Shown: positions 1 to 64,000 of the stretch, piece by piece
How positions within the stretch are numbered: the first letter of the stretch is position 1
Layout: each line of letters starts with the position of its first letter
DNA from: Podarcis bocagei
Lineage: Eukaryota
Reading direction: 5' to 3' (one strand)
Assembly (NCBI GenBank): GCA_964188305.1
Contig: OZ076887.1
Length of the DNA stretch: 64,000 nucleotides
Notes under the pieces: generated by a model
Seen by the model: only the letters and a program-made list of their open reading frames with translations
What the model was told of the DNA's origin: nothing
Databases searched by the model: none
Translations under genes and position numbers: made by a program

Positions 1-14
1 CTGGGGGTGGCAGT

Positions 15-263
15 GAGAGCCAGTGTGGTGTAGTGGTTAAGAGCGGTAGACTCATAATCTGGTGAACCGGGTTCGCGTCTCAACTCCTCCACATTCAGCT
101 GCTGGGTGACCTTGGGCTAGACACACTTCTCTGAAGTCTCTCAGCCTCACTCACCTCACAGAGTGTTTGTTGTGAGGGAGGAAGGGAAAGGAGATTGATA
201 GCCACTTTGAGATTCCGTAGGGTAGTGATAAAGTGGGATATCAAATCCAAACTCTTCTTCTTC
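15..263 (+). mobile_element. Squam3-type tRNA-derived SINE, full length
   Basis: Starts GAGAGCCAGTGTGGTGTAGTGGTTAAGAGCGG (pol III A-box), has a GGTTCG B-box-like motif, and ends AAATCCAAACTCTTCTTCTTC. Short cagtg direct repeat at both ends. Matches my recollection of the lacertid Squam3 consensus. Confidence 0.85.
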
Positions 264-845
264 AGTGGAAGGGCATGCCACGCACCACACGCATCATTAG
301 GAGGAGGCCAAGAAGGAGGTGCTCATCACTGGGAGGAGGTCTCCTCTGCCCCTTCAACATTGGGGGAGCTCAGCTTCCGGCCTACAAATATTGAGGGGAG
401 ATGGTACCTATGGCTTGATGTTAACAATTCAGGGGCAGCCAGAGCTGGAAAATATATAAATGCATATTTGTCATATGGCAGCTATTGTTGCCCTGAAATT
501 TCAGACAATAGTAAAGTCAATGAGAATTTGTAGGAAGTAATGTTGAGAGGTTTTAAAACTGATGATTTCTCTAAAACTTTGAGAGAGGCATTACGAATCC
601 CTAGCTACATCTGTCTTTGTAAAATATCTGCTACTGACTCGTTGCACAGGTGGCCTGTAACGTTAGTGAACCAAAGTGGCTGTATGGATGTAAGAGGTCT
701 AGGCAAGCCCAACAAAGTCACTGAAACCTGCATGGTGGAGCACCTGGGCTTTTAAGGTTTAGATAGAAGCAACATTTTTAAGCAGCTGCAACTAAGTCTA
801 TTATTTCTTCACCAGCTGATTGGTAAAGAAAGCAGTCTTCTACAG

Positions 846-979
846 ACTTCCAATAAGATGCTGCAGCAGGATGAAGCAATATCAGCCTTAAAAACAAGGC
901 ATGTGTTTCGCGAGTCTCTTCAATCAGAAGAATGGGGCAAAATCTCCAAAATGGCAGATTCCATGAAGAAACTCAACAG
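846..979 (+). CDS. Candidate penultimate coding exon of an unidentified plus-strand gene (TSNKMLQQDEAISALKTRHVFRESLQSEEWGKISKMADSMKKLN-R)
   Basis: Acceptor cttctacag ends at 845. The exon is 134 nt, open in frame 0 and ends in phase 2. The donor AG|GTCAAT is weak. Helical, coiled-coil-like composition; phase matches the exon at 2235. Confidence 0.45.
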
Positions 980-2234
980 GTCAATGACAGTAGTCAAAAC
1001 AGGAAAATAGGAATCTGGGATTGTAGATGGGTTTTGATGTCTTATGAACAGAATTCTGAACACTGATAAACTTTAAACAACATTTATATGGTGTAATGTA
1101 ACCTGGACAATTAATGATGACTTTCCCCCCCTTAACTGTTCATTTCATTATGTTTTTAGATGTGCTGGAAGCTGCCCAGAGTGGCTGGGGTATAAATAAT
1201 AAAATTGTTTTTGTTGTTAGTTTATCAAATTCATATATTTCCCATTGCTTAAGAAGCAACCTCTTGGTGGCATATATAGAGTTATTGTCAGCACTGGATT
1301 TGGGGCAGTGTGGGCAGTTCCCCTGCAGCAGCAACAACAACACCTATATTTATATGGATACCTACTGAGATCAATTTTAAAAGCAACTGTACCAAAATGT
1401 ATGATTGTGAAAATAAGAAATACTGGGGATGGGGCACCAAATGTTGTCCTCACTCAGGGTGCCATATGACCAAAGTCTGCCCCTTTTATCATATTCAGCC
1501 CTCTTCAAGGCTATGCAAAACAAGTTACACCAATTAGGGATGTTGAAGAATTCTGACAGAAATAGGAGCAGAGATTGCTGATGTTTGCTTATTCGGCCCA
1601 TGTCCAGAATGGAAATCAATCCACCTGATAGGATCGATATCCGTGGCAGCTGTTGTTTTCAGTCTGCAAATGATGCATAACTGATTACCTCTCCCTGCCC
1701 ATTTGCATGGTGCTTCCTTTGCATCGACAGGAATAGTGTAGAGCAATATAGCAATAACATAATTACATTATTAATTCCACAAAATTCCACCACAGCAGGC
1801 AACAAGATGAACAATGTAGCTTTTGTTGGAAGCTGAACTGCAGTGGAACAGAAACAGCACTGCATGCAATGAACATAGGTCTGAAGAGAAATTGATGCTG
1901 TCTTACATCCCTAGCTGAGACATAGTTTGAAACTTGTCAAAGACCATCCCATGAATTAGGCTTCTACACACTCCATGGCACACTGCTATCTCCTCCTAGT
2001 AAAGCACTATGAGGTGGGAGACATTATATCCAATCAGGTTCCCCCTTTCTGTGCCAGTGCTGAAAGCAAGTGATCTCTTGTCTTGTATGGAATCTTCCAG
2101 CCTCTCTTATAAATGAGGGGTAATTATACTGACACCTATACAGTTACTCTTGCAGAAAGGAAAATTTGGCAGAAGCTAATCAGGTCCCACAGGTATACAT
2201 TTCTTTAATTTATATTTTACATTTCGTATTTCAG

Positions 2235-2271
2235 ATGTAAGACTGAACGCAAAGTCAGCGGACTCTATTAA
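2235..2271 (+). CDS. Candidate terminal coding exon ((R)CKTERKVSGLY*), followed by polyA signal AATAAA at 2282-2287
   Basis: Strong acceptor ttctttaatttatattttacatttcgtatttcag. Phase-2 join with 846-979 gives an open frame to TAA at 2269-2271. AATAAA lies 10 nt after the stop. Confidence 0.5.
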
Positions 2272-4083
2272 TATGAATACAAATAAACGTTATTCAAGCA
2301 TCATCCCTGACTAACAATTCTAAGCCCTAGTCCTTTAACATTTAAATCCCAACATACCTGAGCTGTTCTGTCAAAAACAAAAGATGGCAAAAGGGCCACA
2401 TGGATATTTAAGGTTCTCTCTACTGCCAAGGGGCCTCCCACAGCTCTTATCTCCCTTAACAGCCAAGCTCTGAACCAAGCCAGCTTCCTCCAGCCTGCTG
2501 CAGACCTCACCACCCAGAGGATTTCATGCTAATTAGCACAGTTATTTGCATATGGCAAAGCTCTTTTGTGGGAAGCTCATAGCACCTCAGTTTATTACAG
2601 CTTCCATGAGCCAATGGAGTGAGTTTCAATCACGGTCCCTTTAATTAATATTTGTGCTGCAGTGGAATTGTGCCACAATAAGTGTTTAAATATGGGTTAG
2701 ATGCATTCCTTTGGTTGTCTGGATTTTTAAAAATCCCTTTCATCCTTCAGATCTAGTTAGAATGGATGGCAGAGGAGGGGAGACCCTGAAATATATGGTG
2801 CTTCTTCAGAGAAAAGGTTGGCTTTTTTTAAGACATGAAAACTGCAGTTCCAACTTTATTCGGTTTGTTTATTTATTTATTTATTTGATCTATATATTCT
2901 ATTTTGATGCAATTCCTACTGAATCCCAGCCCTATATGGACAAAAGAGGCAAAACACCTGTAAAGAAAAGCAGAATTAGAAATCCTGCTCATCACATGGA
3001 ATCTCAGTAAAATGTTTCTGGCTATAGCAGCAACCGAAATCCAAGAACGTTTGGCAATATAGGAAAAAGCAGGAAGAAAGGGGGGGGGGAGTAAAACAAC
3101 AAAAGGCATTGTAACAGACTAAAAATAGAAAAACACAGGAAGGACAAGGAAGGGAAGGGAAATGGATGAATAGTTAAGAATTGCCAAGCGAAGAATGTTA
3201 CAGCTAGTCATACAGCATAACAGTGTTTAAAAGTCAAGATCCGAGGGAGAAGATGATTCACAGTGTGCCTGCAAATCTATAACCCAGATAAACAGACAGA
3301 CCTGGATTTCAACCACTGAGTCCTAGTGAGATCAACAAGACTAAATCGGCATACATCCAAACAAATAGGCTATGTAGCCTAGCCTAGTCAGCTGCCAGAA
3401 ATTCAGAGGGTGGGAGAAATATGAGAAGAAAATGAGCACTAGAGATAAGATGAGGTGGTGCATGTAAGATACCCTAAATTGCAAGGACATGTAGAAAGAG
3501 CAGGGAGATATATAAGAATGAAGAAGCTGAGCAAATTGTCAGGGAGGGAGGTAGACAAAAGGTCAAAACAGAACAGATGAGCTAGTGCAGAGAACCTGGG
3601 ATGAGGAGAGAAATCGAATTGGATTGGGAGATGGATAAAAAGTCATTGAAGGTGACAGAGTATGGGATGATAAGGTCCTGCTTCCTGGAACAAAGGAATA
3701 GTCTAGCCATGCTAGTCTGGAAATCCAGACAGTGCTTAAATATGCAGCAATGAAGCTTTTATCAGTTAAGAGTAGCCAAAAGGTCCAGGATTCTTTAAAA
3801 TATCAGTGAACCTCACAGGCACTCCCATCTTTTGATTCCTGCACATAGCTCAGAAAGCATTCGCCATGTTTTCATTCAGAATAAATATAACCACACAGCA
3901 GCTAACATAATTCTATTTGTCCCACAGGGTTTTCATTTGGATATGCTGTGAAATGCCATGGCACTTGAAATCCACAACAACACGCCGATCAGCTAAGGTT
4001 GCCAGCTTAAATATAGTATGGTGCTCTTATGCCTTTAAAAGTTCACAAGAGAGAGAACTTTAGCAGGGGGTGCTTATCTATAC

Positions 4084-4150
4084 CTGTGAAGTTTCTTTTG
4101 CGTTGTCTCTGTAAGTAAATATTTTTTAAAAAATAAAAATCCTGTTGAAT
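4084..4150 (-). other. Candidate 67-nt non-coding (5'UTR) exon of the minus-strand gene
   Basis: Minus-strand acceptor gtcttcttttacag|ATTC and donor CAG|GTATAG; no ATG inside. An alternative acceptor lies at 4108. Confidence 0.35.
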
Positions 4151-4799
4151 CTGTAAAAGAAGACACTAATTGTTAACACTGGTTATGAATGGAAGACTAC
4201 CTGAAAGTTCAGAAGACCACTGTGGAATTTATTTATTGAATGATTGTTTTTAAAAATTGATTAATTGAGTTATATTTCATGCCACATCTACTGATTATCA
4301 AAAGTGTTTTGATACTTTAAAGAACTCATTTTGACATGAATTTTCCTAAGCACTAGCATTCTTCAGATGCAAACAGTAGTCAGATTTGGCCATAACTTTA
4401 AACTTCAAACAACTTCACAACACTTACTTGTACATGAAGTTGCCAGCCCCAAAGAGCCACCACCAGCAAAGCAATGGTTCATCCATGCGCAAAGGAGAAT
4501 ATACATTTACTGGTAGCAATGAACATTTCTTCCCCACCCATGCAAAGTGACATCAATTATTGAACAAAAGAACTCTAAATGTATAACATATTCATTAATT
4601 TGAGCAAAGGCTAACTGCAGTTGAACTCCGGCAGCTATTCTGAGTGCAAGAGCCTGTAAATTGAAAAACAATGAAGTTTAATACCCCTGAGCATGTACAG
4701 AATGCACCTCTGCATATCCTATTAAGCCAAATGTATCTTGGATTTCACAGAAACATCTTCAGAAGGAACAATTTTGAGATATGAATATGCACCAGCACC

Positions 4800-4855
<56 letters not shown>
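4800..4855. repeat. (GCTT)n tetranucleotide microsatellite
   Basis: About 14 perfect GCTT units. Confidence 0.95.
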
Positions 4856-5439
4856 TCAGGAATTAAGGACTGAATACAATCCATTCTCTCATAGAAAATC
4901 CATTGGCACTCAGGTAGGATTTCACATTATTATTATTTTTAAGTGTTGAAGTAAACATGATTTGAATCACTCATCTTGTGTAGTATTAAGCAAAGGAATA
5001 AATAAAAAGTAATAGTCTCAGCTCTTGCCACTTAACATAAATTGTTATCAGGCTATTTTTCCTCCAGACTAAATCAGCATGTACAAAAGCCTGTACAATA
5101 TAAGTGGAACAGTTTAGAGACCATGGTATTTCTTGTTTAATTTTCAACAATTTATAAAGAACAAAAACCCAACTATTTATAGACCAAGCATTTATAGAGA
5201 GAGAAAAATGAAACACTTCCTGGAATGGCTTTTAATTCAAATTACCTTTCTGGATACCATTGTACTTTTATCCTCTGTAGAGCTTCCTTCTGTTTTCACT
5301 CCCTTTCTCAACTTGGCAAATTTTGCCTGAACTCATAATGCCACTGTGGGAGATTTCAGCAGATATACCTGCCTGCTTTCCACTGTCTCACCACTAACAT
5401 GCCAGTAGACATCCACCATATCCAAAAGATGAGTTTAAG

Positions 5440-6437
5440 ACCATCCCTAAAGCAGACTATTATTACAGATGCAAAGCAAGCTGACCACTCCTGAAGAAAT
5501 CAACTCCAGACCCAGAAGAATTTAATAATTATCAGCCAATTGCTAAAATCCACCTCCTAAAGAATATATCTGAGCACGTGGTTGATGTACAAGTCCATGT
5601 ACTCTTAGACGAGAATGAGTTTCCAGATACGTTGTAATCTGAGTTCAGGACATTGTTTAGGCATCATGGTGTTTGGACACCTTGAATGGATAACCTATGA
5701 AAAGAGAAAGATGGAGGAGTGTGATACCGTTGATTTTCCTGGTCATTTCAGCAGCTTCTGTTAACATTGACCATGATATCCCTTCTGGAGAGTCCACAGG
5801 GACTGGAGTCACTGTGTTCCATTTCTACCTCTATGGACAATTCCTGATGATGGTTCTAGTTAACTACAGCTTGTGTTTTTGGCATTTATACTTTGGGATC
5901 CTGGATGACATGATGTATCCCATGCTATTTAATATCTACATGAACATCTGAGTAACGTCAACTAGTAGAATGAATTGAGAGATTATTAATATTTCACTAA
6001 TGGTGATGGCGATGATGATGCTCTGCGCACCAAAACTGTAAGAAGGAGCAGTATGAAAATCAGATAAATAAATATACAGATGACAGCCAATATTTATCTT
6101 CTTTCCATCAAAGTGGAGTATTAAATCAGTTTCTGGCTACAGTAAGGGACTGAAAGAGAGACAAAAAACTGAGGATCAATCAGGACAAGACAGAGATTCC
6201 TTGGGAGAGTAACTCATCAATTCAAGGGAGTGGTGTGTGCTAGACAAAATTGCCAGGTACACTCCAGGTTATAACACATGCCACATGGGGCTGCAGTTAG
6301 GAATCAAGCAGTCATATTCTGCGGTAATTGCAACTGAGTTGTGTGTTCATGTTAGGCTTATGTCAGCTGCACTAGTTTACAGTTCATTTCCGTGATCAAA
6401 CCAAAGTGGTAAACTCTTAAAGCCCTTCACAGCCTGA
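5440..6437 (+). mobile_element. Degenerate L2 LINE reverse-transcriptase fragment, interrupted by BovB
   Basis: Conceptual translation PLLKKSTPDPEEFNNYQPIAKI...DTL*SEFR resembles L2 ORF2 (PLLKKPSLDP..NYRPVSNL..LDPFQSGFR). Many stops and frameshifts; boundaries approximate. Confidence 0.7.
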
Positions 6438-8479: not shown

Positions 8480-10300
8480 CATTATTTATTAATTTATATA
8501 CCACCTACTTGCCAAAAATCGCTTCCAAGTGATTTACAAGTATAAAGCCAGCTACAGAAATATGGCCACACGTGATTGAAATATACAATAGAACAATTCA
8601 TCAAAACATTAAAATAAACATCCATACTGAAAATGTACCATAAACAAGGCCATTAAAGCCGCAGAATTGAAGCAGCAGTTAAAACAATTAAAATAGGGTG
8701 TTCAGATCAGGGAAATGCGCATGTTAAAAAAAAAGTGTTTTCAAAAGTTGGCAGAATTGCAGTATTGAAGGAAGGAACCTCTTGAATTTCAAAAGGTAGA
8801 GGATTTAACAACACAGGTGCCACCATTGAAAAAGTCTGTCTCCGTATTACCACATGCCAGTAATCATCAGGTCATGGCAGACTAGCCAGGTTCCATTTGT
8901 TGGCAGTGGAGGAGAAGACAGTCTTTTAGTTAACCTTGTCCAGAGTTATTCAGGGCTTTATATGTAAGTAGCAGGATCTTATAATAGGTTAATAGGCAGC
9001 GAATGCAGATCCTTTAGTACTACAGTGGTACCTTGGGTTAAGAACTTAATTCATTCTGGAGGTCTGTTCTTAACCTGAAACTGTTCTTAACTTGAGGTAC
9101 CATTTTAGCTAATGGGGCCTCCTGCTGCCGCCGCTCCGCCACCAAGCAATTTCTGTTCTCATCCTGAAGCAAAGTTCTTAACCTGAGGTACTATTTCTGG
9201 GTTAGCGGAGTCTGTAACCTGAAGCGTCTGTAACCCGAGGTACCACTGTAATATGATATGCACCCAATAAGGAGAACTACTCACCACCTGGACCATTGCA
9301 TTCTGTACCAGCTGCAGCCTCTGGGCCAGCCTTAATGGAAACCCTACATAGAGCACAATACTCTAAAATGTGAGGTTACACATGGTTATGTTAGAGTGGC
9401 CAAAGTGTCAAGTAAAGGATGTAGTTGACACTGTGGCCAAAGCTACTGATGGGCATTATTCACCATGAAGGCCACTTGGGCCTCCATGGACAAAGACAGT
9501 TCTAATAACCCCCCTCAAAAACTGTGTTGCTTCAGAGGGAGTGCAATCTTCTCTAGAACAGGCAGAGAAGACCCCCTTAGCCCTCAGACCTGGGAACCAC
9601 TCGCCCAGTACATCTCTGTCTTAGCGGGATTCCAGTTTCACTCTATTGGCCCTCATCCACCCCACCATTGCACCCAGGCACTGGTTCAGCTTATGCACAG
9701 TGTCTACGACTCAAGATATAATGGAAAAATTGAGCTGCATGTCAGCATACAGTACTAATGACACTGTGCCCCAGATCTCCTGATGACTTCTCCTAGCAGC
9801 TTCATATAGATGTTTAATAGGATTGAGGGCAAAATATTGGTACCCCCAGCTAAGCTGCCGGGGTATAGACACATAGTCCCCCATGGCTGTTTTCTGATAC
9901 CAGCCATTCAAGGAGAAGCACTGTAAAACAGGTGCCTTTGACTCCCAGCACAAATAGACAGACCAGCAGGATACAATGGCCGATAGTGCCAAAAGCCACG
10001 GTGAGATCCAACAGCAGCAACAGCTCTCTGTCTCTCCCTTGAAGGAGGTCATCTGTCAGAGCAACCAGGGCTGACACTATGCCAAAACCAGGCCTGAATC
10101 CAGACTGGAATGAGTCCAGGTACTTTGGTTCAGTTTCAGCCAAATGTGCTTCCAGCTTAATTGCCACTACCCTCTAGGGCATTTTGCTCAAAAGGGGAGT
10201 TGTATTAGGGACTGGGCAGTAGGGACAAATACCTCAGAGTTTAGGGAGGGTTTTTTTCCAGCAGCAAATGTAACACCATCTCTTTTAAGCTGATAGCGAC
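8480..10300 (-). mobile_element. Old L2 LINE 3' portion (RT domain to tail), interrupted by a Tc1/mariner MITE
   Basis: ORF 9850-10167 contains YLDSFQSGFRPGFG..SALVALTDDL..LLLLLDLTVAFGTIGH. ORF 9159-9356 contains LYVGFPLRLAQRLQLVQNA. AT-rich tail near 8480; boundaries approximate. Confidence 0.8.
9023..9248. mobile_element. Tc1/mariner-superfamily (pogo/Tigger-like) MITE
   Basis: Terminal inverted repeats CAGTGGTACCTTGGGTTA...TAACCCGAGGTACCACTG flanked by TA at 9021-22 and 9249-50. Same family at 18255, 41931 and 49977. Confidence 0.9.
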
Positions 10301-10963
10301 CATCCCCTCAAATTTCAGTGGCACCCTGTGTGACACCAAAATTTGGTAACCCCCAACCCTCTGCCTCTTGCCTTCCATTCTACACAGTGTTAGTAGCTCA
10401 GGTATAGATGCTAGGCACCAAATGGCTCCTTAAATTAGGGTTATAATCACCAAAACAGAATGACTAGTTGTCATTTTGGACCCAGACAGCTCAAAATTTG
10501 TATTTTTCAATGACTTTTTGGTTTCTGAAATTCATTCTGATAGTGCAGATAAAACATAATGGATAGAATTTGACAGGATGTGTTGCTAGTGTGTGTAAGC
10601 AGTCAAATAACCAAAGATCCCCCAGACATAGCAGCCAACCACCAAACCTAAGATGGTGGGAGAATAGGTGGAAAAATCCAATCCAGATAATATTGTGTTT
10701 TGGGGGGGAGTTATGTTGCAGACATTGCTTCAGATACCCAGGACTCAAAACAATTTAAAAGGAAATACCAGTTCTTTAATTGAACTCACAAACTAACTTG
10801 CAGCTAGTTTTGGTCTCTGCAAAGCATGCCTGTTAACCTCACCATCATGTTCTGAACTAGTTGCAGTTTCTGCAACTAGTCTATTCGTAAGTAGAGGTAC
10901 TACTGTACTACAATAGTACAGCTTCTTAGCAGAGCCTCATTCCCTGCTTTTACCTTGCTCAGG

Positions 10964-11570
10964 CATAGAATCATAGAATCATAGAGTTGGAAGAGACCAC
11001 AAGGGCCATTGAGTCCAACCCCCTGCCAAGCAGGAAACACCATCAGAGCACTCCTGACATATGGTTGTCAAGCCTCTGCTTAAAGACCTCCAAAGTAGGA
11101 GACTCCACCACACTCCTTGGCAGCAAATTCCACTGTCAAACAGCTCTTACTGTCAGGAAGTTCTTCCTAATGTTTAGGTGGAATCTTCTTTCTTGTAGTT
11201 TGGATCCATTGCTCCGTGTCCGCTTCTCTGGAGCAGCAGAAAACAACCTTTCTCCCTCCTCTATGTGACATCATTTTATATATTTGAACATGGCTATCAT
11301 ATCACCCCTTAACCTCCTCTTCTCCAGGCTAAACATGCCCAGCTCCCTTAGCCGTTTCTCATAAGGCATCGTTTCCAGGCCTTTGACCATTTTGGTTGCC
11401 CTCCTCTGGACACGTTCCAGTTTGTCAGTGTCCTTCTTGAATTGTGGTGCCCAGAACTGGACACAGTACTCCAGGTGAGGTCTGACCAGAGCAGAATACA
11501 GTGGCACTATTACTTCCCTTGATCTAGATGCTATACTCCTATTGATGCAGCCCAGAATTGCATTGGCTTT
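10964..11570 (-). mobile_element. CR1 LINE, 5'-truncated 3' end
   Basis: ORF 11271-11639 [47 protein letters not shown]...[11 protein letters not shown] is the CR1 ORF2 C-terminus. (GATTCTAT)n tail at about 10964-10985. Confidence 0.95.
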
Positions 11571-12532
11571 ATAATATATGTCCACAACTTTACAACTGGC
11601 AATATATGTCCACAACTTTACAGTATGAACCAGGCACACAAACCTCTGCTTTAAAAACTGGGTGGTCTTTTTAAAATGAAGAGTAGTCTAAATACGAAAC
11701 AATTTAATAAGAAAAGGAAGGCAAAGTGAGCACGAATCATCAGGGAAATTGTACTTTTTCTGTACATTCTGCTTGTTCATATACTGCAGAAATACCCAGT
11801 GGGCATGACACAGCTACTGTAGGTGGATAAAGGGAAAACTCAGTTCACCTGAGTGGCCATTTGCAAAAGAAAAAGAAAAAAACCCAGGTAATCTTTTTTT
11901 TTTAAAAAAAGTTATGCATGTTGCACTAAGAATCTATTCATCACTGCTACCCATGAAATGTCAAAAAACAAGTGCTTTATGTTTGTTTGGGATTTGAAGT
12001 GTTTAATTAGGAGGAAAACCCCTGGCAGTGACTAGATTATTCTTCCCTCTTTAAAATTAGTATGATAGTGTTATAATGCTACAACAATTTCATTAAACCA
12101 TATTTTACTAGTACTTTTAAATTTAAAACAATGATAGATTGATTTAAAATACAAATGGGATTATAAAATGATGCACACTGCAGAGGTTATAGTGAACATG
12201 TGCTGAGCTGTGATAGATTCACCTGTCTAGTGCGACATGCAGTCAGTCCCATGTCAAAACCACACCTCTTTCAAAAGACGGAAGAGTACTGCTAAAAGCA
12301 TTTATACCTTTGGATACTGTCAGAAGATAAATATGTTCCCATAAGAGAGTTTTCTTTTTCTGCAGTGAGAAAAAAAGTGTGGAAGAAGTGCTGAGAAAAC
12401 ACAGGAGGGTTACAAATGCATGACAACATTATGTGGACTTTCCATAAAACGTAAGTGAATGAGGAATGACAAGTCCACTCTAAACACTGTGTCTGGAAGC
12501 AACCCAAAACAGAGGCCCTGGGTTCACAGTAC

Positions 12533-12604
12533 CTTACGTGAGAGGACTGGAATGAACTGGATGCAATTGCGGAGAGAAACTTTCTGGTGTTTTCAAATGC
12601 TCTC
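12533..12604 (-). other. Candidate internal exon (72 or 67 nt) of the minus-strand gene
   Basis: Minus-strand acceptor ccttctgactttgctcag| with a CTGAC branch-point-like motif. Two overlapping donors: AAG|GTACTG (12533) and CAC|GTAAGG (12538). Confidence 0.3.
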
Positions 12605-13362
12605 CTGAGCAAAGTCAGAAGGAAGAGCCCACCACAGAACAAAAAGTAACAAGGTAACACTGGCAACGAATTCACTTTCATAGGTCAACTCTAAGACAAT
12701 CCCTCCAAGTCTTGGGGTTCAACCAGACAATTCATGAAAGCATGCCCCAGCCATATTTTAAGTTGTACAGAAAAGGAAGCTCTGTGCAGCACATTTAATA
12801 TATAAATATATAAATTGTTCTATAGGCTGTGCTCAACACTGGAAAAGGAGAGCACTGAGCAAAAGAAAATAATATATATTTTTTTAAAATGTGATCTCAA
12901 CAGAAGTGATACTGGGCAGAAAGTGACAGATAAAAAGTGCCAGTTCAACCTCATTCATCCACTAAGCTCAAAATAGGATTGATTTATTATAAGTACTTTT
13001 ATACCATCCTTCAATCATATTCCCAGGGCAGCTTACAAAAAGAATACAACAATTAAAATGTAAACACAAATAATATTATGCCACAACATTATAAAAAAGT
13101 AGGCTAAGCACAGTCAGCAGACTTATAATTGCTTCTAAAAAGTTTCGGAAGCTATAATAGTGTTTGCCTGGCATCTGAAAGATGATATAGGCACCAGGTT
13201 AACCTTTATGGGTCATTACCATTGAGAAGATTCTCTGTTGGCCAGCATGTCATCTTAGGACTACTGATAGGAAGCCCTTCTAATTATGATCCCAATTATG
13301 AGTAGGATGTAATGTAATTATCTCTGAGCAGTAGGCACAAATTTACAGGTATCTACATACCT

Positions 13363-13696
13363 GTGGCACTGTGGTCTAAACCACAGAGCCTAGGGCTTGC
13401 CGATCAGACAGTCGGCGGTTCAAATCCCCGCGAAGGGGTGAGCTCCTGCTCCTGCCAACCTAGCAGTTCAAAAGCATGTCAAAGTGCAAGTAGATAAATA
13501 GGTACCGCTCCAGCGGGAAGGTAAACGTCATTTACGTGCGCTGCTCTGGTTCGCCAGAAGCAGCTTAGTCATGCTGGTCACATGACCTGGAAGCTGTACG
13601 CCGGCTCCCTTGACCAATAAAGCAAGATGAGCACCGCAACCCAAGAGTCATCTGCAACTGGACCTAATGGTCAGGGGTCCCTTTACCTTTACCTTT
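13363..13696 (+). mobile_element. Sauria (Squam1) SINE
   Basis: GTGGCACTGTGGTCTAAACCACAGAGCCTAGGGCTTGCC...GCAAGTAGATAAATAGGTACCGC...GGGGTCCCTTTACCTTTACCTTT. Highly similar to copies at 15782, 16783 and 63818. Confidence 0.92.
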
Positions 13697-14094
13697 ACAT
13701 ATCAGGTGCTTTTACTACATATCTTTAGGGGTCAGGCAAAAAAATTCCTCTTCTTCCAGGTCTTTGGTTAATTAAATAATATTCCTTTTAAACTGAATTG
13801 GCGGGGGCAGATTTGGTGTGGTTGTTGTGGTGGTGGTATGTATTTTTGTGTTTTTATATTGTAATCCTCAGATGAACGGCTGTATAGAAATTTAATAGCC
13901 AACAAACAATTATTGTTCCCAAAATGAATTGATGGAATAAGCCTTTGGACATGTATACAAGACACAGGAACAAAAAAAGGCAGTTATAATTCATGAGAAA
14001 CAGTAGTTCTACAGTAGTACTACATTCAGAGTGTACTTGCATTACAGAGAGGCAAGAGAAAGCTCCCAAGGACATAGGGTGTGTGGGGTGTGTG

Positions 14095-14255
14095 TCTCCA
14101 AAGCCCACAGGGCGGTTCACAACATAAAAATACAAAATGAAAACACAAAAGGCATAATAAAACCAAAGCGAAAGCGAAACAAACCAATAGCCCCCTCCCA
14201 GATACACATTTAAAAGGCCACAGAATGGTAAGCAGCCAAATGCCTGGTTAAAGAG
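14095..14255 (-). mobile_element. L2-type 3' tail fragment
   Basis: cccacagggcggttcacaac followed by an A-rich tract and gcagccaaatgcctgg resembles an L2 3'UTR and ORF2 end. Confidence 0.45.
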
Positions 14256-14279
14256 ACAATATAGTCCAAGAACCTACAA

Positions 14280-14855
14280 GGAACTAGACCAGGCCATTAG
14301 GAGGATCCTAGCCTGTGATCACCTATTCCTGCTGGGAGATTTCAGTGCCAGAGCTGGGAACAATTGTCACTCATGGGACAACTGCATAGGCCACTTTGGT
14401 ATTGGCAGCATGAACAAGAACTGACAAAGGCAGCTTGAGCTGTGCTTGTACCACAGCCTTTGCTTCATGGACACGTTTTGCCTCATGGACCACTCCCTGG
14501 TGGCAAGCAGGATCCTTCCCCAGCAAAAGAGGACCTACAGCACAAAACAAAAAGTGCAGACACTTCCAGAGCAGCTATACTTGAATTTTGTGGGTGCTTC
14601 GCCGATTCCATCAAACAAGCTCTACTGAACTGCCCCACAGACAGCACTGAAGCAAGGTGGAACTACATCAAAGAGGCAGCCTGCAAAACAGCTATGTCCA
14701 CTCATTTGGCAAAAGAGAGCAGCAGATCCCTGACTGGTTTGAGGCCGGCATTAAGGACATGGACATGGAGCCTGTTATTGCCACAAAGGACTAGGCTCTT
14801 GTGAACTACAAGTATGTGCCGTGTGAGAAGATGCTTGCTGCACAAAGAAAGGCAA
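14280..14855 (+). mobile_element. Degenerate RTE-clade LINE, endonuclease region (resumes at about 15513-15600)
   Basis: Translation LDQAIRRILACDHLFLLGDFSARAGNNCHSWDNCIGHFGIGSMNKN*QRQLELCLYHSLCFMDTF matches RTE APE motifs (GDFNARVG..GKMNENGQRLLELC). Resumes as IARQYANDYRIKLCQNIQ after the nested L2. Confidence 0.8.
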
Positions 14856-15510
14856 TACTAATAATTTATTTATTACACCCCCCCCCAATCTGGCTAGGTT
14901 TCCCCAGCCACTCTAGGCAGCTCCCAACAGAATATTACTCATAATAATTAAAAAGCAATAAAACATTAAAAACTTGCCTAAATAGGGCTGCCTTCAGATG
15001 TATTCTAAAAGTCAGATAGTTCCTAATTTCCTTGACACGTTCCATAGGCAGTGGCAGAGGAAGGGGGGTGCAAGAGGTGCAGTCCATCACGGGTGTCATC
15101 ACGGGGGGGGGGTGACAAAATGACAAAAATATGAGTTGAGGGGGGAAATGGGCTCACGAAACTTTTTAGTTCAGTCAACAAACGTAATGAAACGTGGCTG
15201 GCACTGGGTGCCACAAAGCGGGGGCCAGCACTTTCCGTGGGGCCTGCAGTGTGCCCAAGCCACGCATCTCTCCTAGGAGTGACATGGTGGTTTGGGTGCC
15301 TGCAGGCTCCACGCTGCCTGAAGCAGCTGCATGGAACTTGCGTCTGCCCTCCGTCTCTCCCTCAGCCGCCCTACAGCTGAGGGGGAGGCGGTGGAGAGGC
15401 TCCATGCAGCGTGCCCCGCCCACACCTGGCACCTGAGCAATTAGCTACACCGCTGTCCACAGGGCGGGCGCCACTACCGAGAAGGCCCTCTGCGTAGTTC
15501 CCTGTAGCTT
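14856..15510 (-). mobile_element. L2 LINE 3' end inserted in the RTE and split by a hAT MITE
   Basis: Tail ...ccccagccactctaggcagctcccaac and VKEIRNYLTFRIHLKAALFRQVF (14935-15040). Continues at 15456-15510 (tccacagggcgggcgccactaccgagaaggccctctg), collinear with the copy at 45507-45833. Confidence 0.85.
15049..15455. mobile_element. hAT-type non-autonomous DNA transposon
   Basis: 8-bp TSD tccatagg (15041-48) and tccacagg (15456-63). Imperfect terminal inverted repeats CAGTGGCAGAG and GCTACACCGCTG. Confidence 0.8.
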
Positions 15511-15781
15511 CAAGGAGTGATGCCCATTGGATTGCCAGACAATATGCCAATGACTACAGGATAAAACTTTGTCAGAACATTCAACTCGATGCTGAGCATC
15601 CCACTTCTACAACAAGCATAGAAACCAAGCGGAGTGCCAGAAAAGACAAGCCCCTTGTTCTGTGACCTGCATTGAAATGCAGCAGGCTGCTTAAGGTGTA
15701 ATGGAGTTCGCAGTCCCTCCTCTGCTAACTGCCTCCCACCAACAAGCTAGCAAAATGTTTTGCAGGCCAGTAACTTCTCTA

Positions 15782-16130
15782 GGGATGCGGGTGGCACTGT
15801 GGGTTAAACCACAGACCCTAGGGCTTGCTGATCAGAAGGTCGATGGTTCGAATCTCCGCGAAGGGGTAAGCTCCCATTGCTTGGTCCCTGCTCCTGCCAA
15901 CCTAGCAGTTCGAAAGCATGTCAAAGTGCAAGTAGATAAATAAACAGGTACCGCTCCGGCGGGAAGGTAAACGGCGTTTTCGTGCGCTGCTCTGGTTCGC
16001 CAGAAGCGGCTTAGTCATGCTGGCCACATGACCCAGAAGCTGTACACCGGCTCCCTCGGCCAATAAAGTAAGATGAGTGCCGCAACCCCAGAGTCGGCCA
16101 CGACTGGACCTAATGGTCAGGGGTCCCTTT
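15782..16130 (+). mobile_element. Sauria (Squam1) SINE, full length
   Basis: tRNA-like head GGGATGCGGGTGGCACTGTGGGTTAAACC...GGTTCGAATC. TSD taacttctctag at 15771-82 and 16130-41. Confidence 0.95.
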
Positions 16131-16782
16131 AACTTCTCTAGCCTTATTTAAAACTACACATTACAACAGCAGTTCTGTGTGGCTACACATAGAATCACAC
16201 AAGAGCAAGTGCACGTTTGTGAGAGAGAAGGAGATTTTGTTTATTTACAACATTTGCATACTGTGTTTCATAATGAATATCCCAGTTCATTCTTAATAGC
16301 AAAAGCAGTACATGAGTGAGGAGGACTGCAGAACAACCCTCACACTTGCATTCCTCCTTTGCAGAAGTTCACACATTGTGAATGTTCTTCCCACAAAAGT
16401 TGAAAGCATATAGAGAAGAGGGGCTGCAGGGTGGTCAGTGGCAAGTGCGTGGAGAGTTCAAATACCTCACACAAGCACACCGCCTTTGTCATTAAAATCA
16501 GACCCACCATTTCTACATGAGTGCCATGTTTACATACACAGAACTGTTGGCGTCTTATCTAGTTCGGCCCTAAAGTGAAGCTCTTCCAGTATGCTTCTAA
16601 TTCAGTATAGGGGAAATCCAAACAAAATCACCACTATTTCAGTGTTAATGCATTCATGCACTCGTTTGCTGTGAATTTATGGCTACAGAACCTGCCACAC
16701 AATGTGCTGCCTCTTTTCAGATATAACCAATATTCTGCTTGTACTGCAGAATTTTTTGTTCCTGCCTATTCTTGATAGCAGT

Positions 16783-17144
16783 GGGACGTGGGTGGCGCTG
16801 TGTGTAAAACCTCAGCGCCTAGGACTTGCCAATCGCATGGTCGGCGGTTCGAATCCCCGCGGCGAGGTGGGCTCCCGTCATTGGGTCCCAGCGCCTGCCA
16901 ACCTAGCAGTTCGAAAGCACCCCCGGGTGCAAGTAGATAAATAGGGACCGCTTACCTGCGGGAAGGTAAACGGCGTTCCGTGTGCTGCGCTGGCTCGCCA
17001 GATGCAGCTTGTCACGCTGGCCACGTGACCCGGAAGTGTCTGCGGACAGCGCTGGCTCCCGGCCTATAGAGTGAGATGAGCGCACAACCCTAGAGTCTGT
17101 CAAGACTGGCCCATACGGGCAGGGGTACCTTTACCTTTACCTTT
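16783..17144 (+). mobile_element. Sauria (Squam1) SINE, second subfamily, full length
   Basis: Same architecture with a different central segment. (ACCTTT)n tail. 15-bp TSD tattcttgatagcag at 16767-81 and 17145-59. Confidence 0.95.
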
Positions 17145-18162
17145 TATTCTTGATAGCAGCTGCTTGCACTACTGCCTTGCACCCTATATGCCTTTAACTA
17201 GTGAATGCCATTAAATCAACTTCTCTAATTGGCCAAGGGCCTTGTTTGAGATCACCATCTCTGTGTAGTAATTTATTGCAGTAAGAGTGCAGGGCTCTGA
17301 TCAGCTAAAGCACTTAACATACACAGCTTTAAGCATGTGAATAAAGCATGTGTGGTAATGACTAGGTAGAATGGGATGTAAGGGGCAGGATGGAGACAGA
17401 TTGTCATTGCCACCCCATATTTATCTCATTGGTACACACTGGGAATGAACAAAAGCAAACAGTTCACCGCCTAAAAAAACCCAAAACTTTGCATTTCTTT
17501 CACTTGTTGCGTTTGTTAATGATAATATCAGCAATTAGAAATAAATGCACACACCTGTATCTCTGGAATTTACTTGGCCTCAGACTTCTTAATGTGATGC
17601 AGACTCCAGAAAATAGAAGCTATATGCTTTTAAAGTCTCTTACACAGAACAGAGGTCTAGTACAGCATAGTTAATTTGTGAGCATGGTGCATGCATGTCT
17701 TTAAACAATGCCTTCTTTCCAATAACTTAAAATGGTTGATCTCAATATATATGCATTTCCTAGTAGGGACAGAAACCTGGGTTCAACTCAGCTCAAGTAT
17801 TTATGGCCTTGGTAATTATGCCGGGTGAACTACGGATCATTTTGCACATGAAGGACATTCAGAAAAGTTTTTTTCACAATTTTTATTTGTGTATAGCGGG
17901 CCTGATTCAGGATGGACAATGATGCAGTAAGTGGGAAAAAAATGAATCTTAATGTGAAAACAGTTCAACAACACTTTGTCTAAACTATGGTCTCGTATCT
18001 TGTTGGAAATTAATTTGGCTGTACAGCCAGTGAATTTCATAAAATAATTTCTAGCTGGGAATAACACCGTTTGATGTGGAAAGCTTGATAATCTTTTTTT
18101 ACTACTACTAATAATAATAATACTAATTTAATATTTATACACCGCCCATCTGGCTGGGTTTC

Positions 18163-18706
18163 CTAAACCTTCCAAATGTCTCTATTTTCCAGGGGCAGTT
18201 CCAGATTTACCGCTGTCCTGGTTTGATCCCAAAATGTCCTACTTTTCCTTAGTACAGTGGTACCTTGAGTTACAAATGCCTCAGGTTACAAACACTTCCA
18301 CTAACCTGGAAGAGTTACCTCGAGTTGAGAACTTTGCCCCAGGATGAGAATGGAAATCATGTGCTGGCAGCGCAGTGACAGCAAGATTAGCGAAAGCACG
18401 CCTCTAGTTAAGAACAGTTTCAGGTTAAGAACGGACCTCCGGAATGAATTAAGTTCGTAACTGGAGGTACCTCTCATCAGAGAAATGTTGGAGGCTTTGC
18501 AACCCCCAAGCCAATGAGACATCTGAAGGCAGCCCTGTATGGTTTTTTTTCCCCATGTTTCTTTTTTATTATGTTTTTATATATGTTGGAATATGCCCAG
18601 AGTGGCTGGGGCAACCCAGCCAGATGGGTAGGGTATAAATAATAAAGTTGTTGTTGTTGTTGAATAGGACATCTCTATTTTCATCTGAGAAATGTTAGAG
18701 AGTATG
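18163..18706 (+). mobile_element. Composite MITE carrying an L2 3' tail (copy 1), with a nested mariner MITE
   Basis: Collinear, as reverse complement, with 44738-45082. Ends aaccttccaaatgtctctatttt and gagaaatgttagagagtatg. Internal L2 tail at about 18517-18660. Confidence 0.7.
18255..18474. mobile_element. Tc1/mariner-superfamily MITE, right end clipped
   Basis: TA|CAGTGGTACCTTGAGTTAC ... GTAACTGGAGGTACCTCT; same family as 9023 and 49977. Confidence 0.85.
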
Positions 18707-19290: not shown

Positions 19291-22200
19291 AAATAGAAAC
19301 ACCGTGTACAGAGGCACTGTACCTCTGAAAGGCACTTACTGGGGACAAACAACAAGAGATGTTCCATTTGAATAATGCAGAGTGCCTGCCTTTAGAAATA
19401 GAGTGCTAGTTTAAATATATTTTGTAAGTAAGACAACTGTTCAGGAATCTCTGTAGAAAGTGAGTGGGTCTGCATTATGCAATCAGTCTCTACATTTTGT
19501 GTCTTCATGCTATAATCATTATAAAATGTTATTATCTATGCTCTGCCCTCCCAGTCTTCATCCTACAAGAATGTCTACGCTGCTCAAGGAACAATTTCTA
19601 CTGGTCTTAAATTAGGATACAATTCAAACTGGAATTTGACTTTTAAACTGTTTGAGTCGTAAGCCTGCTCTAGTGTTTTCTACCATATAAAATTCCCACA
19701 GGAGACCAAATAAGACAATGCCAAACAAGTTTCCATTTATTATCATACTTTTCCATTCCTTACCACTCTGGAGAATTTTCAGGGTCAAGGCTATGTTTCA
19801 TGAACATTGTTTGGAAACATTTTATTCATTTTCTGGTGTGGCATAAGGTGTTATTTATACCATAGTTTTTAACACAAATTACTGCTATTCATTAACTCCT
19901 TCCTTTGTCCCTGTGTTTAAATCACCCCAAATCCCGGAAATAACAGGCCACTTGAATACCTGCTGCCAAAGTCCATGGCTACCAAACAAATATCCAAGTT
20001 GGGATTATACATTATTACTTATGGCGTTGAATACTGATGAATACAGGTTTGCTAACTATCTCATACATGCTCACAGCAGCCTGTCATGATGCTACTAATG
20101 CTCATCCATGCACCAAAACCTGCCTCCATGCATAGGAAGCAGTTTCTGGATAAGACTGACTTATTTTCAAACCTGCCCTTTATGAAAAGTTCCATATGTG
20201 TAATAAATGTAGGCAATTATTACTATATTTCCAGGAAACAGTCAGTAACCCACACTTAACTTTTGCAGTACAAAATGTACATTAAGTGACACACCTGCCT
20301 CAAATACAGGACATATAAATTTTATGATAACTGGAAGTACAGGACCTCCAAACTCTTAATGGGTGTTCATCCAAATTTGCATGGGGGCACCAATACCACT
20401 CATTGGGAAACTTCAAATAGTATTTTCAGATGTCCCAAAACTGGGTACACTCTATTTTAGTGGGCTGCAGGACTTGTTTCCAAAAGGTAAATATTAGCTG
20501 AAATATTGTAATATGCCAAATCATATATAATTAGTTTGTATATATAATACCAACTTCAGACACCATGACTGGCTTCAGGGAGCTAATTCAAGAATTCCTC
20601 TAATACAGGAAGGCCCCATGAAAGGACCTTCAATTATACAGAAGGTCCCATACGCAATCAATGGCATGTCCAAGTGGTAGGCCTGTGGAAGGTTCCTGTC
20701 TGAAACCCTGAAGACATAGACAACGCTAAGCTACATGGATCAATGGACTGATTTCATAAAGGACAGTTTCCTATGTTCTATTGTTCCACACTTTCAGAAT
20801 TACAGAAATACAAGGAACAAGTGAAATGCAGAACTAGCTTCCTGTTTTTGAACTTCCCTCTGTAAAGATCAGAGCAAAGTTGGGCATCTCCTCCCCACAG
20901 TGAGATGAGTTAACTCCAGATGTAAAGACAGCTTACATCTCACTCTGGGGAAGAGCTTCAGGGTGGATGTGGAGAGGTCCATACACTGTGCTTCAGCAGC
21001 AAGAGTGTAAACAAAAGCAGAATGGACCACACACATTCTTCCTCTCATGTATCTTCTCCATAAAGTTGCTAAAGCTCCTGTGTACTTCAGCACTAAAGAC
21101 AATAATCATTCTATGTCTGTCCTGAAAATGAAATATCCCTGACAGATCATGGCTAGCAAATAAAATTCCCTTTAATTATAAATGGAATTGGTGTGGATAG
21201 AAGCCTTCAGAGATGAACTAATTTGGAAGATTTAGACATCTGATTGTAGTTAATTTGCAACAGAATGGGACTGTTTTGTACTGAAATAAGCAGACTCAAG
21301 AACATCATCAATCTAAATATAGCTTCACTATACATCAGAAGATGCTCTTGGGTGTGAAATGTACCATGCATGTTGCCACCTATATTAAGAAAAGGGAGCA
21401 ATGATAATGGCTTTGTTTTTTCCTTAGCTGTCCAGCAAATTTAACTTTCCATACTTTACTTTAATTTATATTTACAAAGCCAAACCTTACTGAAGTTTAA
21501 ATGCATCACACATGACCATTATATTTTTCAGTGTGGAAAAAAGGATTAATATTAGATTTGATCAGGAAACATATCTTGATCAGGTATAGTTCTAATGAGC
21601 ATCTGCCTAATTTGTGGAAGTCATAAAACTCTTTGTCCTGGAAAGGTCAGTTTGCCCCTTCTCTTGTTTCATTGTATGGCAAAACTGTTATTTGTTTGTT
21701 TAGGCAGACTTTTGGTTTATTAGATAGATAAGGGGGCTGCTCCTGACTAATTTGAAATCATCACTCTTTTTCCTGAAGTCACTGCTAGAAGTGGGAGAAA
21801 AAAGGCTATATTTTTTGTAGTTTTACGTAATCACACAGATTTTTGTTAGATTGCATTTACCGTGTTTATTTCTATTGGTATCCTTACAAATTTATTTCTG
21901 CCTCTAAAGTGCTGACTCTAAACTGGAAAGTAGTTGGCAACTGGCAAGCGCTAAAGCTGTATCTCAAAATGAAGAGGCTCTGAATGAAAATTTGCGTTTG
22001 TCATCTTATAGACATGACTGTTTAATTTCACTACATCAAAACATGCTTAGTCAGATAAACCAAATGAAAACAACAACACTCTTAACACTGAAATAGGAAT
22101 TAATATGAAAGAAATTAATAGTTGTTGGATGCATTAAGGAACAATGCATTAAGCCTGACAGGGATCCAGATTTCACAGGTTTAAAAATCTGTGCTTCAGC

Positions 22201-40095: not shown

Positions 40096-40271
40096 NNNNN
40101 NNNNNNNNNNNNNNNNNNNNNNNNNNNNNNNNNNNNNNNNNNNNNNNNNNNNNNNNNNNNNNNNNNNNNNNNNNNNNNNNNNNNNNNNNNNNNNNNNNNN
40201 NNNNNNNNNNNNNNNNNNNNNNNNNNNNNNNNNNNNNNNNNNNNNNNNNNNNNNNNNNNNNNNNNNNNNNN
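40096..40271. other. Assembly gap (176 N)
   Basis: Run of N after a polypyrimidine tract. Confidence 1.
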
Positions 40272-40741: not shown

Positions 40742-40881
40742 NNNNNNNNNNNNNNNNNNNNNNNNNNNNNNNNNNNNNNNNNNNNNNNNNNNNNNNNNNN
40801 NNNNNNNNNNNNNNNNNNNNNNNNNNNNNNNNNNNNNNNNNNNNNNNNNNNNNNNNNNNNNNNNNNNNNNNNNNNNNNNNN
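40742..40881. other. Assembly gap (140 N)
   Basis: Run of N followed by (GCT)n. Confidence 1.
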
Positions 40882-44737: not shown

Positions 44738-45082
44738 AACTCCAGCATTTCTCCAAGGAAAATAGGGACGTCCATTCCATAATGATACATGTTACTATTT
44801 ATACCTCGCACATCTTACTGGGTTGCCCCAGCTACTCTGGGCAGCTTCTAACATGTATATAAAAACATAATAAAACATTAAACATGTAAAAATAAATAAA
44901 TCCCTATACAGGATTGCCTTCTGACGGCTCCGGGTGGAATAACTCCATACCTTCCAACATTTCTCCAGTGAAAATAGGAACATCCTTAGGAAAAGTGGGA
45001 CATTTTGGGATCAAATCAGAAACCGGAACGGCTTCTCTGAATCAGGAATGTCCCTGGGAAATAGGGATACTTGGAGGGTCTG
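44738..45082 (-). mobile_element. Composite MITE carrying an L2 3' tail (copy 2)
   Basis: Core MITE CATACCTTCCAAC (about 44946) to TTGGAGGGTCTG (45082). L2 tail at about 44795-44925. Duplicated end motif CTCCAGCATTTCTCC..GAAAATAGGGACGTCC at about 44740. Confidence 0.75.
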
Positions 45083-46319: not shown

Positions 46320-47015
46320 ACTTTAAGATGCTGCAGAATGCCGCGGTGAGACTCCTCATGGGGTCCTCGCCACGGGAGCACATTCATCCGGTTCTATACC
46401 AGCTGTACTGGCTCCTGCTGGGGTACAGGATCAGGTTTAAGGTGCTGGCCTAGGACCCTCATACCTACGGGACCGCCTCGCCTGGTATGCCCCACGGAGG
46501 ACCTTAAGGTCTGCAAATAGTAACACTCTGAAGATCCCAGGCCCCAGGGAGATTAGACTGGCCTTGACCAGAGCCAGGGCCTTTTCGGACGTGGCCCTGG
46601 CCTGGTGGAATGCTCTCACAAGAGACCAGGGCCCTGCGGGATTTGACATCTTTCTGTAGGGCCTGAAAGACGGAGCTGTTCCGCCAGGCCTTTGGTCAGG
46701 GTTCAGTCTGATTCTTTTATTTCTGTATAAGAACAAGCATTATAGAGGCCTCTTAGCCCGCTCGTAGGTCCTTTATAAGACCAGTGGTAACATTTGGCCC
46801 TGGAGAATATTAACCACTCTCAATTTTACCCGTGGACTGCCATCTATCCAGATTTTAATTTGCTCTGAACTAATTTTAAGATGTATTTTAATTAATTGAT
46901 TGCCTATTTTTATGTTCTTATGTTCTTTGTGTGCTGTGTTAGTTTTATGATGTTAGCTGCCCTGAGTCCGGCTCTGGCCGGGGCACAAATAAATTTATTA
47001 TTATTATTATTATTA
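46320..47015 (+). mobile_element. L2 LINE 3' fragment (different family)
   Basis: LQNAAVRLL..LYQLYWL.. and ARAFSDVALAWWNAL..LKDGAVP-type L2 C-terminal motifs with frameshifts. (ATT)n tail at about 46995-47015. Confidence 0.8.
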
Positions 47016-52986: not shown

Positions 52987-53119
52987 NNNNNNNNNNNNNN
53001 NNNNNNNNNNNNNNNNNNNNNNNNNNNNNNNNNNNNNNNNNNNNNNNNNNNNNNNNNNNNNNNNNNNNNNNNNNNNNNNNNNNNNNNNNNNNNNNNNNNN
53101 NNNNNNNNNNNNNNNNNNN
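52987..53119. other. Assembly gap (133 N)
   Basis: Run of N. Confidence 1.
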
Positions 53120-60504: not shown

Positions 60505-60525
60505 CCTGTTCTATTTATATTGTTC

Positions 60526-61611: not shown

Positions 61612-62199
61612 TACACATCTGTCAGTGTTCAAGGTCAGATTGTCTATTGTTCCATGGGAAGAACAGATCCAGTTATAAACAACCAGTAAAGAGAAAGTCA
61701 AAACAAAAGTCAGTTCCCAGGTTTTTGTAATCCCAAAGCCCTGTAGGGGGAGTGCCACCAGGTTTCAAAGACAAAGAAGGAAGTTTTCCGCCATTAAAGT
61801 TCCAATTTAGTTCAGTTCAGAAAATCCAATAGTCCCTTCACAGACCAAAAGTTCCCCAAAGCACTTTTTAAAGTTCAACAAAGTTTCATAGAAGGTGCCT
61901 GTAACAATGTCACATCCAGTCTGTTTCTGCTCAAAAGTATCAGTTATGTTCCAACAAGTTTCATTAACTGTATCCGCAGTTTGACAAAGTCTCTCCTCCC
62001 TGGCAGCCCGCCGATCTGGCTCTTTAAAATTGCAGCCCGAAAAATAGGAGGAAAGTTCCAACGTAATACTTAGAGTCTCTTTTAATCAGTAACCATTTCT
62101 ACTTTCCATTTAGGAAAAAACAACTCCATAAGCGCACGAAAGTTAAAGCTTCCCACAGTCTCTTTTTAAACGCTTTCCGCTTCTTAGATCTTTGCTTTG

Positions 62200-63817: not shown

Positions 63818-64000
63818 AAAGGTAAAGGGACCCCTGACCGTTAGGTCCAGTCGTGGCCGACTCTGGGGTTGCGGCACTCATCTCACTTTATTGGCCGAGG
63901 GAGCCGGCGTACAGCTTCCGGGTTATGTGGCCAGCATGACTAAGCCGCTTCTGGCGAACCAGAGCAGCGCACAGAAACACCGTTTACCTTCCCACTGGAG
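63818..64000 (-). mobile_element. Sauria (Squam1) SINE, 3' half (runs off the window)
   Basis: AAAGGTAAAGGGACCCCTGACC...; reverse complement of the 3' half of the copy at 15782. Confidence 0.92.

Follow-up and report, generated by a model that had tools for sequence, protein, structure and literature searches.

A probable last-exon copy

The window analysed here is a stretch of 64,000 nucleotides (nt) from Podarcis bocagei (contig OZ076887.1 of GenBank assembly GCA_964188305.1). Near its left end, on the plus strand, lies a segment that resembles the last exon of an unnamed coiled-coil gene, together with short pieces of the adjoining intron and 3' untranslated region (UTR). A first-pass annotation, made from the letters alone, had placed here the spliced 3' end of an unrecognised gene, joining 846-979 to 2235-2271 with polyadenylation near 2300. 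Its claim that the segment is plus-strand sequence from the C-terminus of a helical or coiled-coil protein was borne out by homologues from both protein and tblastn searches, and the parent was identified as a gene for a protein of about 436 amino acids (aa) with about 8 or more coding exons.

An exhaustive phmmer search with the 44-aa piece against representatives of 1.84 billion proteins matched four proteins, including snake and turtle homologues (E 6e-10 to 2e-7). These were an 84-aa turtle fragment with 72% identity to the piece, a 335-aa Python protein, a 438-aa Notechis protein, and a long repetitive protein with 36% identity across four stretches. The 90% cluster of the Notechis protein holds six further snake orthologues, whose automatic names are all different. 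The matches sit just ahead of the C-termini of the homologues, and tblastn extended them in the window to E values of 1e-17 to 1e-25 over 58-68 residues of the family C-terminal exon. Residues 17-83 of the turtle protein P0001 aligned without gaps to 807-1007 (57% identity, E 1e-21), up to the codon preceding the TAG at 1008-1010. Snake proteins aligned to 813-986 at 62-69% identity, and lacertid proteins to 810-1007 at 75-79% identity (E 1e-24 to 1e-25).

In the Notechis and Podarcis loci (L001 and L002), the matching part is a single uninterrupted last exon that runs from an acceptor, corresponding to window position 816, to the stop codon. The Notechis exon is entered at the border between ...ttctatcttCAG and CTTGCTGGGAAAGAA, and its counterpart in the window lies between ...tttcttcaccAG and CTGATTGGTAAAGAA, where the exon start is 816. 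The acceptor before 816 is in the top 1.7% of all AGs of the window, and the stop TAG lines up with the stops of four lacertids. Because homology crosses both 846 and 979 and the last exon is uninterrupted in Notechis and Podarcis, the real unit is the reading frame 816-1010, which contains 846-979 and whose true C-terminus is the read-through to the TAG.

The limits of the homology are sharp. On the left, blastn to the Podarcis locus begins at 814 with standard and at 804 with relaxed scoring, the relaxed match covering 804-1115. On the right, homology runs about 105 nt into the 3'UTR, and blastn to the four lacertid loci (L002, L003, L004 and L005) stops at 1115-1118. The canonical UTRs have no AATAAA or ATTAAA for at least 670 nt past the stop, and the copy therefore ends inside the UTR. 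Within 261-815 nothing resembles the upstream coding exons, with alignment scores at the level of shuffles. In the whole 64 kilobases (kb) only the last exon of the coiled-coil gene was matched and none of its other exons, and in a self-blast of 1-3000 the exon region is single-copy within the window. Pfam gave no match to the exon peptide or to a 50-aa open reading frame (ORF), and Rfam gave none across the whole window. A word search with the 44-aa piece, which covers only proteins of 24-77 aa, was also without a match.

Table 1. Features at the left end of the window
Feature	Coordinates	Strand	Basis or remark
Last-intron pyrimidine-tract remnant and AG acceptor	804..815	+	left homology edge; lines up with the Notechis and Podarcis acceptor
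Last coding exon copy, 64 codons and TAG 1008-1010	816..1010	+	tblastn
3'UTR start copy, first ~105 nt	1011..1118	+	right homology edge, blastn
'Exon 1' of the first-pass annotation	846..979	+	arbitrary sub-segment of the exon copy; neither border a splice site
'Exon 2' of the first-pass annotation, with TAA and AATAAA	2235..2287	+	chance match; no reads, no homology
tRNA-derived short interspersed element (SINE) copy, adjoining the segment	1..260		sequence; hundreds of mismatched RNA reads
Dispersed-repeat fragment	1143..1218		25 nt past the right homology edge; self-blast copies at 18564-18661 and 44826-44875

Splice signals of the two-exon model

The letters from which the two-exon model was built are all in place. 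An AG at 844-845 opens the 134-nt segment 846-979, which is followed by GTCAAT; a pyrimidine-rich ttcAG ends at 2234, the frame then runs to a TAA at 2269-2271, and an AATAAA lies at 2282-2287. Both peptide pieces also translate as had been written. The exon borders at 846 and 979 are nevertheless wrong, for the homology passes ungapped across both, from 807 or 813 to 1007. Likewise, the canonical C-termini align to the read-through 980-1007 in place of a second exon at 2235-2271, whose 12-codon tail was compared with them by eye only. The interval 2235-2287 showed no homology to any canonical locus when the loci were compared by blastn.

Such a pattern is cheap. Across the window, 1,070 different plus-strand AG positions open AG..GT segments of at least 134 nt, and the plus strand holds 69,973 two-exon terminal models made of an open exon, an intron, a short tail, a stop and a polyA signal. 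The first 30 kb contain 20,190 such models, against 9,357-17,202 in each of ten dinucleotide shuffles. Because shuffles of 30 kb yield thousands of equal models, the combination of AG, GT, stop and polyA signal is at chance level and carries no weight as a splice signal. Sites were also ranked among all AGs or GTs of the window with an approximate matrix typed from general knowledge. On this scale the acceptor at 846 is equalled or beaten by 61% of AGs. The other two sites rank higher, with the donor at 980 among the top 8% of GTs and the 2235 acceptor among the top 4% of AGs. The G at 979, which improves the look of the donor, is a private derived change of the window copy. The argument that the segments keep CpGs fails on similar grounds, since the CGCG at 910-913 is private and derived and the canonical lacertid genes have CATC there. 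All three proposed splice sites are spurious.

Flanking sequence and synteny

The synteny of RNF217, the coiled-coil gene and TPD52L1 was seen in five loci (L001-L005), and in lacertids this is the canonical gene order. In snakes and lacertids a TPD52-family gene follows 2-5 kb downstream of it; the first coding exon of this neighbour reads MEAQAE in Podarcis, and in Zootoca an IBR-domain ligase gene lies upstream of the coiled-coil gene. The loci of P. muralis, P. raffonei, L. agilis and Z. vivipara are mutually 89-94% identical through the last intron and the downstream DNA. Of 5.2 kb surrounding the last exon, 3.0-3.8 kb aligned. In contrast, the window matches each of these loci only over 814-1115/1118, at 87.7-88.0%, and the best local alignments of its flanks on either side of this island score like shuffles.

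Dispersed repeats of the window have counterparts of 92-95.5% identity in the lacertid loci and none in the snake locus. The window DNA is lacertid by these shared repeats, and orthologous flanks should therefore align. Furthermore, synonymous divergence (dS) from Podarcis amounts to only 0.15, and the copied UTR, about 88-93% alike, matches as closely as the exon does. This is at odds with an old orthologue or paralogue in which neutral DNA has lost all recognisable similarity. Neither the TPD52L1 first-exon pattern nor TPD52 family motifs were found in the window outside its N-masked stretches, and the first 12 kb contain no CpG island. The window is probably not the canonical gene locus, as judged from these comparisons.

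Transcription

Three bulk RNA runs and one single-cell run of the same organism, their tissues not known, were mapped on 1-6000 at 93% likeness, with 6-13% of each run's depth read. DNA runs of the RNA source organism hold 73-74% of the 31-mers of 600-2500, and its genome carries this stretch almost unchanged. Outside repeats and eight cross-mapping reads, no depth was found on either strand across 401-6000 in the four runs. The eight reads come from one run and cover about 816-905. They pass across 846 without splicing and show variants at 818 and 823. At 818, 823, 868 and 887 every one of the 7-8 reads covering 818-887 has C, A, T and G, respectively, and the G at 845 is retained. These are exactly the letters of the canonical Podarcis exon in the Q allele of the older P. 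muralis annotation; the window itself has G818, G823, A868 and C887. Since the reads match the canonical letters, they originate from the canonical gene and are cross-mapping only. No read in the four runs carries the private letters of the window.

The same runs gave no 979^2235 joint, and neither depth nor molecule ends at 2201-2400, so that the junction and the polyadenylation near 2300 that had been predicted both went without support. The further suggestion that the gene is nested antisense within an intron of a minus-strand host gene was equally unsupported by the read depth over 401-6000. No host gene was identifiable, and Pfam found no match for ten long ORFs located near the 33-55 kb CpG islands.

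Substitutions in the probable copy

The window carries 37 private substitutions, compared with 3-6 in each of the canonical species, whose four exons are nearly identical. The 15 private coding changes fall 3, 6 and 6 on codon positions 1, 2 and 3, and the 7 private UTR changes in 108 nt represent the same rate as in the coding part. With no third-position excess and a UTR-like rate, the private changes look neutral, though the counts are small. The ratio of non-synonymous to synonymous rates (dN/dS) relative to Podarcis is 0.56, from small counts of 5.5 synonymous and 12.5 non-synonymous changes, and is distinguishable neither from 1 nor from the 0.43-0.48 of the gene. The window has Gln in place of a Leu that all inspected orthologue tails share, from starfish and nemertean to snakes. 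The coding part has a single indel, an in-frame deletion of 6 nt. Simulated copies with 15-22 random substitutions keep an open frame in 44-56% of cases, and because about half of them stay open, the open frame of the window is uninformative.

Discussion

We conclude, with a probability of roughly 0.7, that 804-1118 is a non-processed, fragmentary paralogous relic of part of the coiled-coil gene, silent and drifting. This conclusion draws on observations of homology that ends abruptly on both sides, of private changes in excess, of missing synteny and of a lack of reads with the letters of the copy. The relic would consist of the complete last coding exon, preceded by about 12 nt of intron end and followed by ~105 nt from the start of the 3'UTR. 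The functional gene lies at a separate place in lacertid genomes, flanked by RNF217 and TPD52L1. The copy may have arisen by an event at the DNA level, or one templated by pre-mRNA, before the split of Podarcis, Lacerta and Zootoca. It would have drifted neutrally since, its open frame and good acceptor surviving by luck and not by function. Around the fragment, a search for terminal inverted repeats, target-site duplications and flanking direct repeats returned only short repeats at chance level.

The closest comparison is with the last exon of Podarcis muralis LOC114594115 (XP_028579152; P0018/P0129) and its lacertid orthologues (P0130, P0132 and P0134). The window copy shares with them the acceptor, the frame and the stop column, the LI.KESS start and the GK ending, at ~88% DNA identity over 804-1118 and 75-79% protein identity over 66-68 residues. 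Unlike the canonical lacertid gene, it lacks intron or intergenic flanks that align and has neither RNF217 nor TPD52L1 next to it. It combines its 37 private substitutions with the 6-nt deletion and the lack of reads with its own letters, and its Leu-to-Gln change falls on a conserved heptad position. Proteins of Notechis scutatus (XP_026521802; P0004), Python bivittatus (XP_025029626; P0003) and the turtle Platysternon (fragment TFJ95599; P0001) belong to the same family, in which a last exon in one piece closes an all-helical protein of ~335-438 aa. These differ from the window in their identity of 57-69% and in being complete genes upstream of a TPD52-family gene, and their automatic names disagree (spindle pole body component 110-like, tumor protein D53 isoform X3 and tryptophan 2,3-dioxygenase). 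The copy resembles non-processed gene-fragment pseudogenes in being isolated and unexpressed, in keeping some intron while lacking the other exons, and in its equal rates across codon positions. In contrast to typical members of that class, it has no disabling mutation, and one of its breakpoints lies almost on an exon border.

Several points weigh against a relic. The left edge of the homology is within ~12 nt of the exon acceptor, a position that a random breakpoint would take with a likelihood of only ~1% and for which we have no mechanism. A strong acceptor and a sole indel that is in frame are also expected of a terminal exon still in use, and the dN/dS of 0.56 is near the normal value of the gene, with counts too few to separate the two. 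Silence is weakly shown, since even the parent gene yielded no more than 8 reads, all from one run, and the evidence comes from only four RNA runs of partial depth, tissue not known. Any exons left of position 1 are out of view. If the segment is a relic, a second, window-like copy would be expected in lacertid genomes.

The foremost alternative is a working last exon of an unannotated gene, either a fast-evolving full paralogue or a chimera, whose upstream exons lie left of the window. We regard this as unlikely, and keep some weight on it mainly because the left breakpoint near the exon border is unexplained. The acceptor at 816, a homology edge that coincides with the exon start, the open frame with its stop at the ancestral column and in-frame deletion, and the dN/dS would all suit such an exon. 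However, no read carries the letters of the copy, the private changes lack a third-position excess and accumulate as fast as in the UTR, and the Leu conserved in all inspected orthologue tails has been lost. Moreover, neither the phmmer search against representatives of 1.84 billion proteins nor the word search turned up a protein with this variant, the 50-aa ORF has no exact match on record, and an open frame is expected by chance about half of the time. A doubtful variant is that a plus-strand gene left of the window, either another gene or a duplicate, has captured the copied exon and uses it as its terminal exon. Capture, if true, would account for the surviving acceptor, frame and stop and for homology that starts at the exon border. 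It would imply a lineage-specific lacertid gene with a borrowed coiled-coil tail, expressed only in tissues that were not sampled, for example testis.

It is very improbable that the window holds the true orthologous 3' end of the canonical gene with flanks that have merely diverged. An exon and proximal UTR that form the sole conserved island against snake and lacertid loci are usual for distant orthologues, and the peptide has lacertid-type residues in common with the canonical proteins. Yet with a dS of only 0.15 and a UTR ~88-93% alike, neutral flanks are expected to align and do not, although the canonical lacertid loci align with each other through their introns. The RNA source organism has this stretch in its genome with little change, but what it expresses is the canonical sequence of Podarcis type, and the window has no TPD52L1 start within reach and no CpG island in its first 12 kb. 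A W-linked gametologue was dropped by reasoning, the canonical gene being on chromosomes of 118-125 megabases in four lacertids.

A processed retrocopy of the parent mRNA has, in our estimate, slightly less chance still. A short isolated piece that starts at an exon boundary would fit it, but the sequence upstream of 816 matches the intron pyrimidine tract and not the penultimate exon, with upstream coding exons at shuffle level. There is also no A-tail. Homology stops ~105 nt into the UTR, in which the first polyA signals are at least 670 nt downstream, and flanking direct repeats were not found. A processed pseudogene was thus rejected on its intron-like upstream sequence and its lack of an A-tail and of target-site duplications. 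Least credible of all is the splicing of 846-979 to 2235-2271 with polyadenylation near 2300, for which the letters are present and the acceptor at 2235 ranks well, but whose borders are both crossed by homology, whose joint and ends are absent at 2201-2400 from the four RNA runs, whose G979 is private, and which has tens of thousands of equals by chance.

If the segment is a relic, then what looked convincingly like the hidden spliced end of a gene would be a duplicated exon, and 804-1118 should be marked as a pseudogene fragment with no gene model built on it. A relic of this kind is an ordinary finding. The side result on its parent is possibly more useful, as the automatic names within this conserved coiled-coil family contradict each other and the family merits a name and a functional test.

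The parent gene family

The description of the gene as unrecognised did not hold, for the parent is annotated by RefSeq in many squamates, including P. muralis. Annotations extend to snakes, lizards, turtles and amphibians, and invertebrate relatives are known, with family proteins of ~440-560 aa from cnidarians to reptiles. A word search with the Notechis protein listed among its matches lizards (Podarcis, Zootoca, Anolis, Pogona, Varanus, geckos, Elgaria and Rhineura) and orthologues in turtles, gharial, amphibians and a ray. Also among the matches listed, at 30-39% identity, were echinoderms, molluscs, annelids, cnidarians and others. Mammals, birds and teleosts did not appear among the best 120 matches, which is not proof of their absence. 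The family has no Pfam model and no solved relative in PDB.

Public names of the parent's products are misleading. The Python entry is called 'tumor protein D53 isoform X3', the Platysternon entry 'tryptophan 2,3-dioxygenase', and an Ophiophagus model that includes an IBR domain (P0022) 'putative E3 ubiquitin-protein ligase'. Such names most likely arise from merging with, or borrowing from, the neighbours TPD52L1 and RNF217. At position 21870 of the P. muralis locus (L002), which corresponds to window 845, the protein has His (CAT) in XP_028579152.2 and Gln (CAG) in XP_028579152.1. This difference is likely a polymorphism, with the RNA reads carrying the Gln allele. The Lacerta agilis locus (L003) contains a species-specific repeat insertion of ~440 nt at 19708-20150, 95 nt upstream of the canonical last exon, and this insertion is related to window 46477-46723.

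Other features of the window

The SINE at the left end attracts mismatched RNA reads at 125-190x in all four runs. In the single-cell run, 18 reads share a recurrent joint there that goes back 36 positions (49 to 14) with 7 extra letters, which is probably another SINE variant or a library artefact. The repeat of 1143-1218 is also present in the Podarcis locus. A dispersed repeat of ~350 nt occurs in four copies (13363-13691, 15776-16135, 16782-17139 and 63817-64000), one of which is 95.5% identical to a copy in a canonical Podarcis intron (L002 18803-19161); this identity indicates a young lacertid repeat family.

A full-length L1-type element occupies 56713-61758 on the minus strand, with an open ORF1 of 410 aa (60526-61758) and an open ORF2 of 1263 aa (56713-60504); an exact look-up of the ORF2 product in the public gene-call collection gave no record. 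N-masked stretches lie at 40096-40271, 40742-40881 and 52987-53119, two of them 470 nt apart within a CpG-rich block at 40-44 kb, where the visible flanks resemble conserved non-coding sequence. A perfect (GCTT)14 microsatellite is found at 4800-4855.

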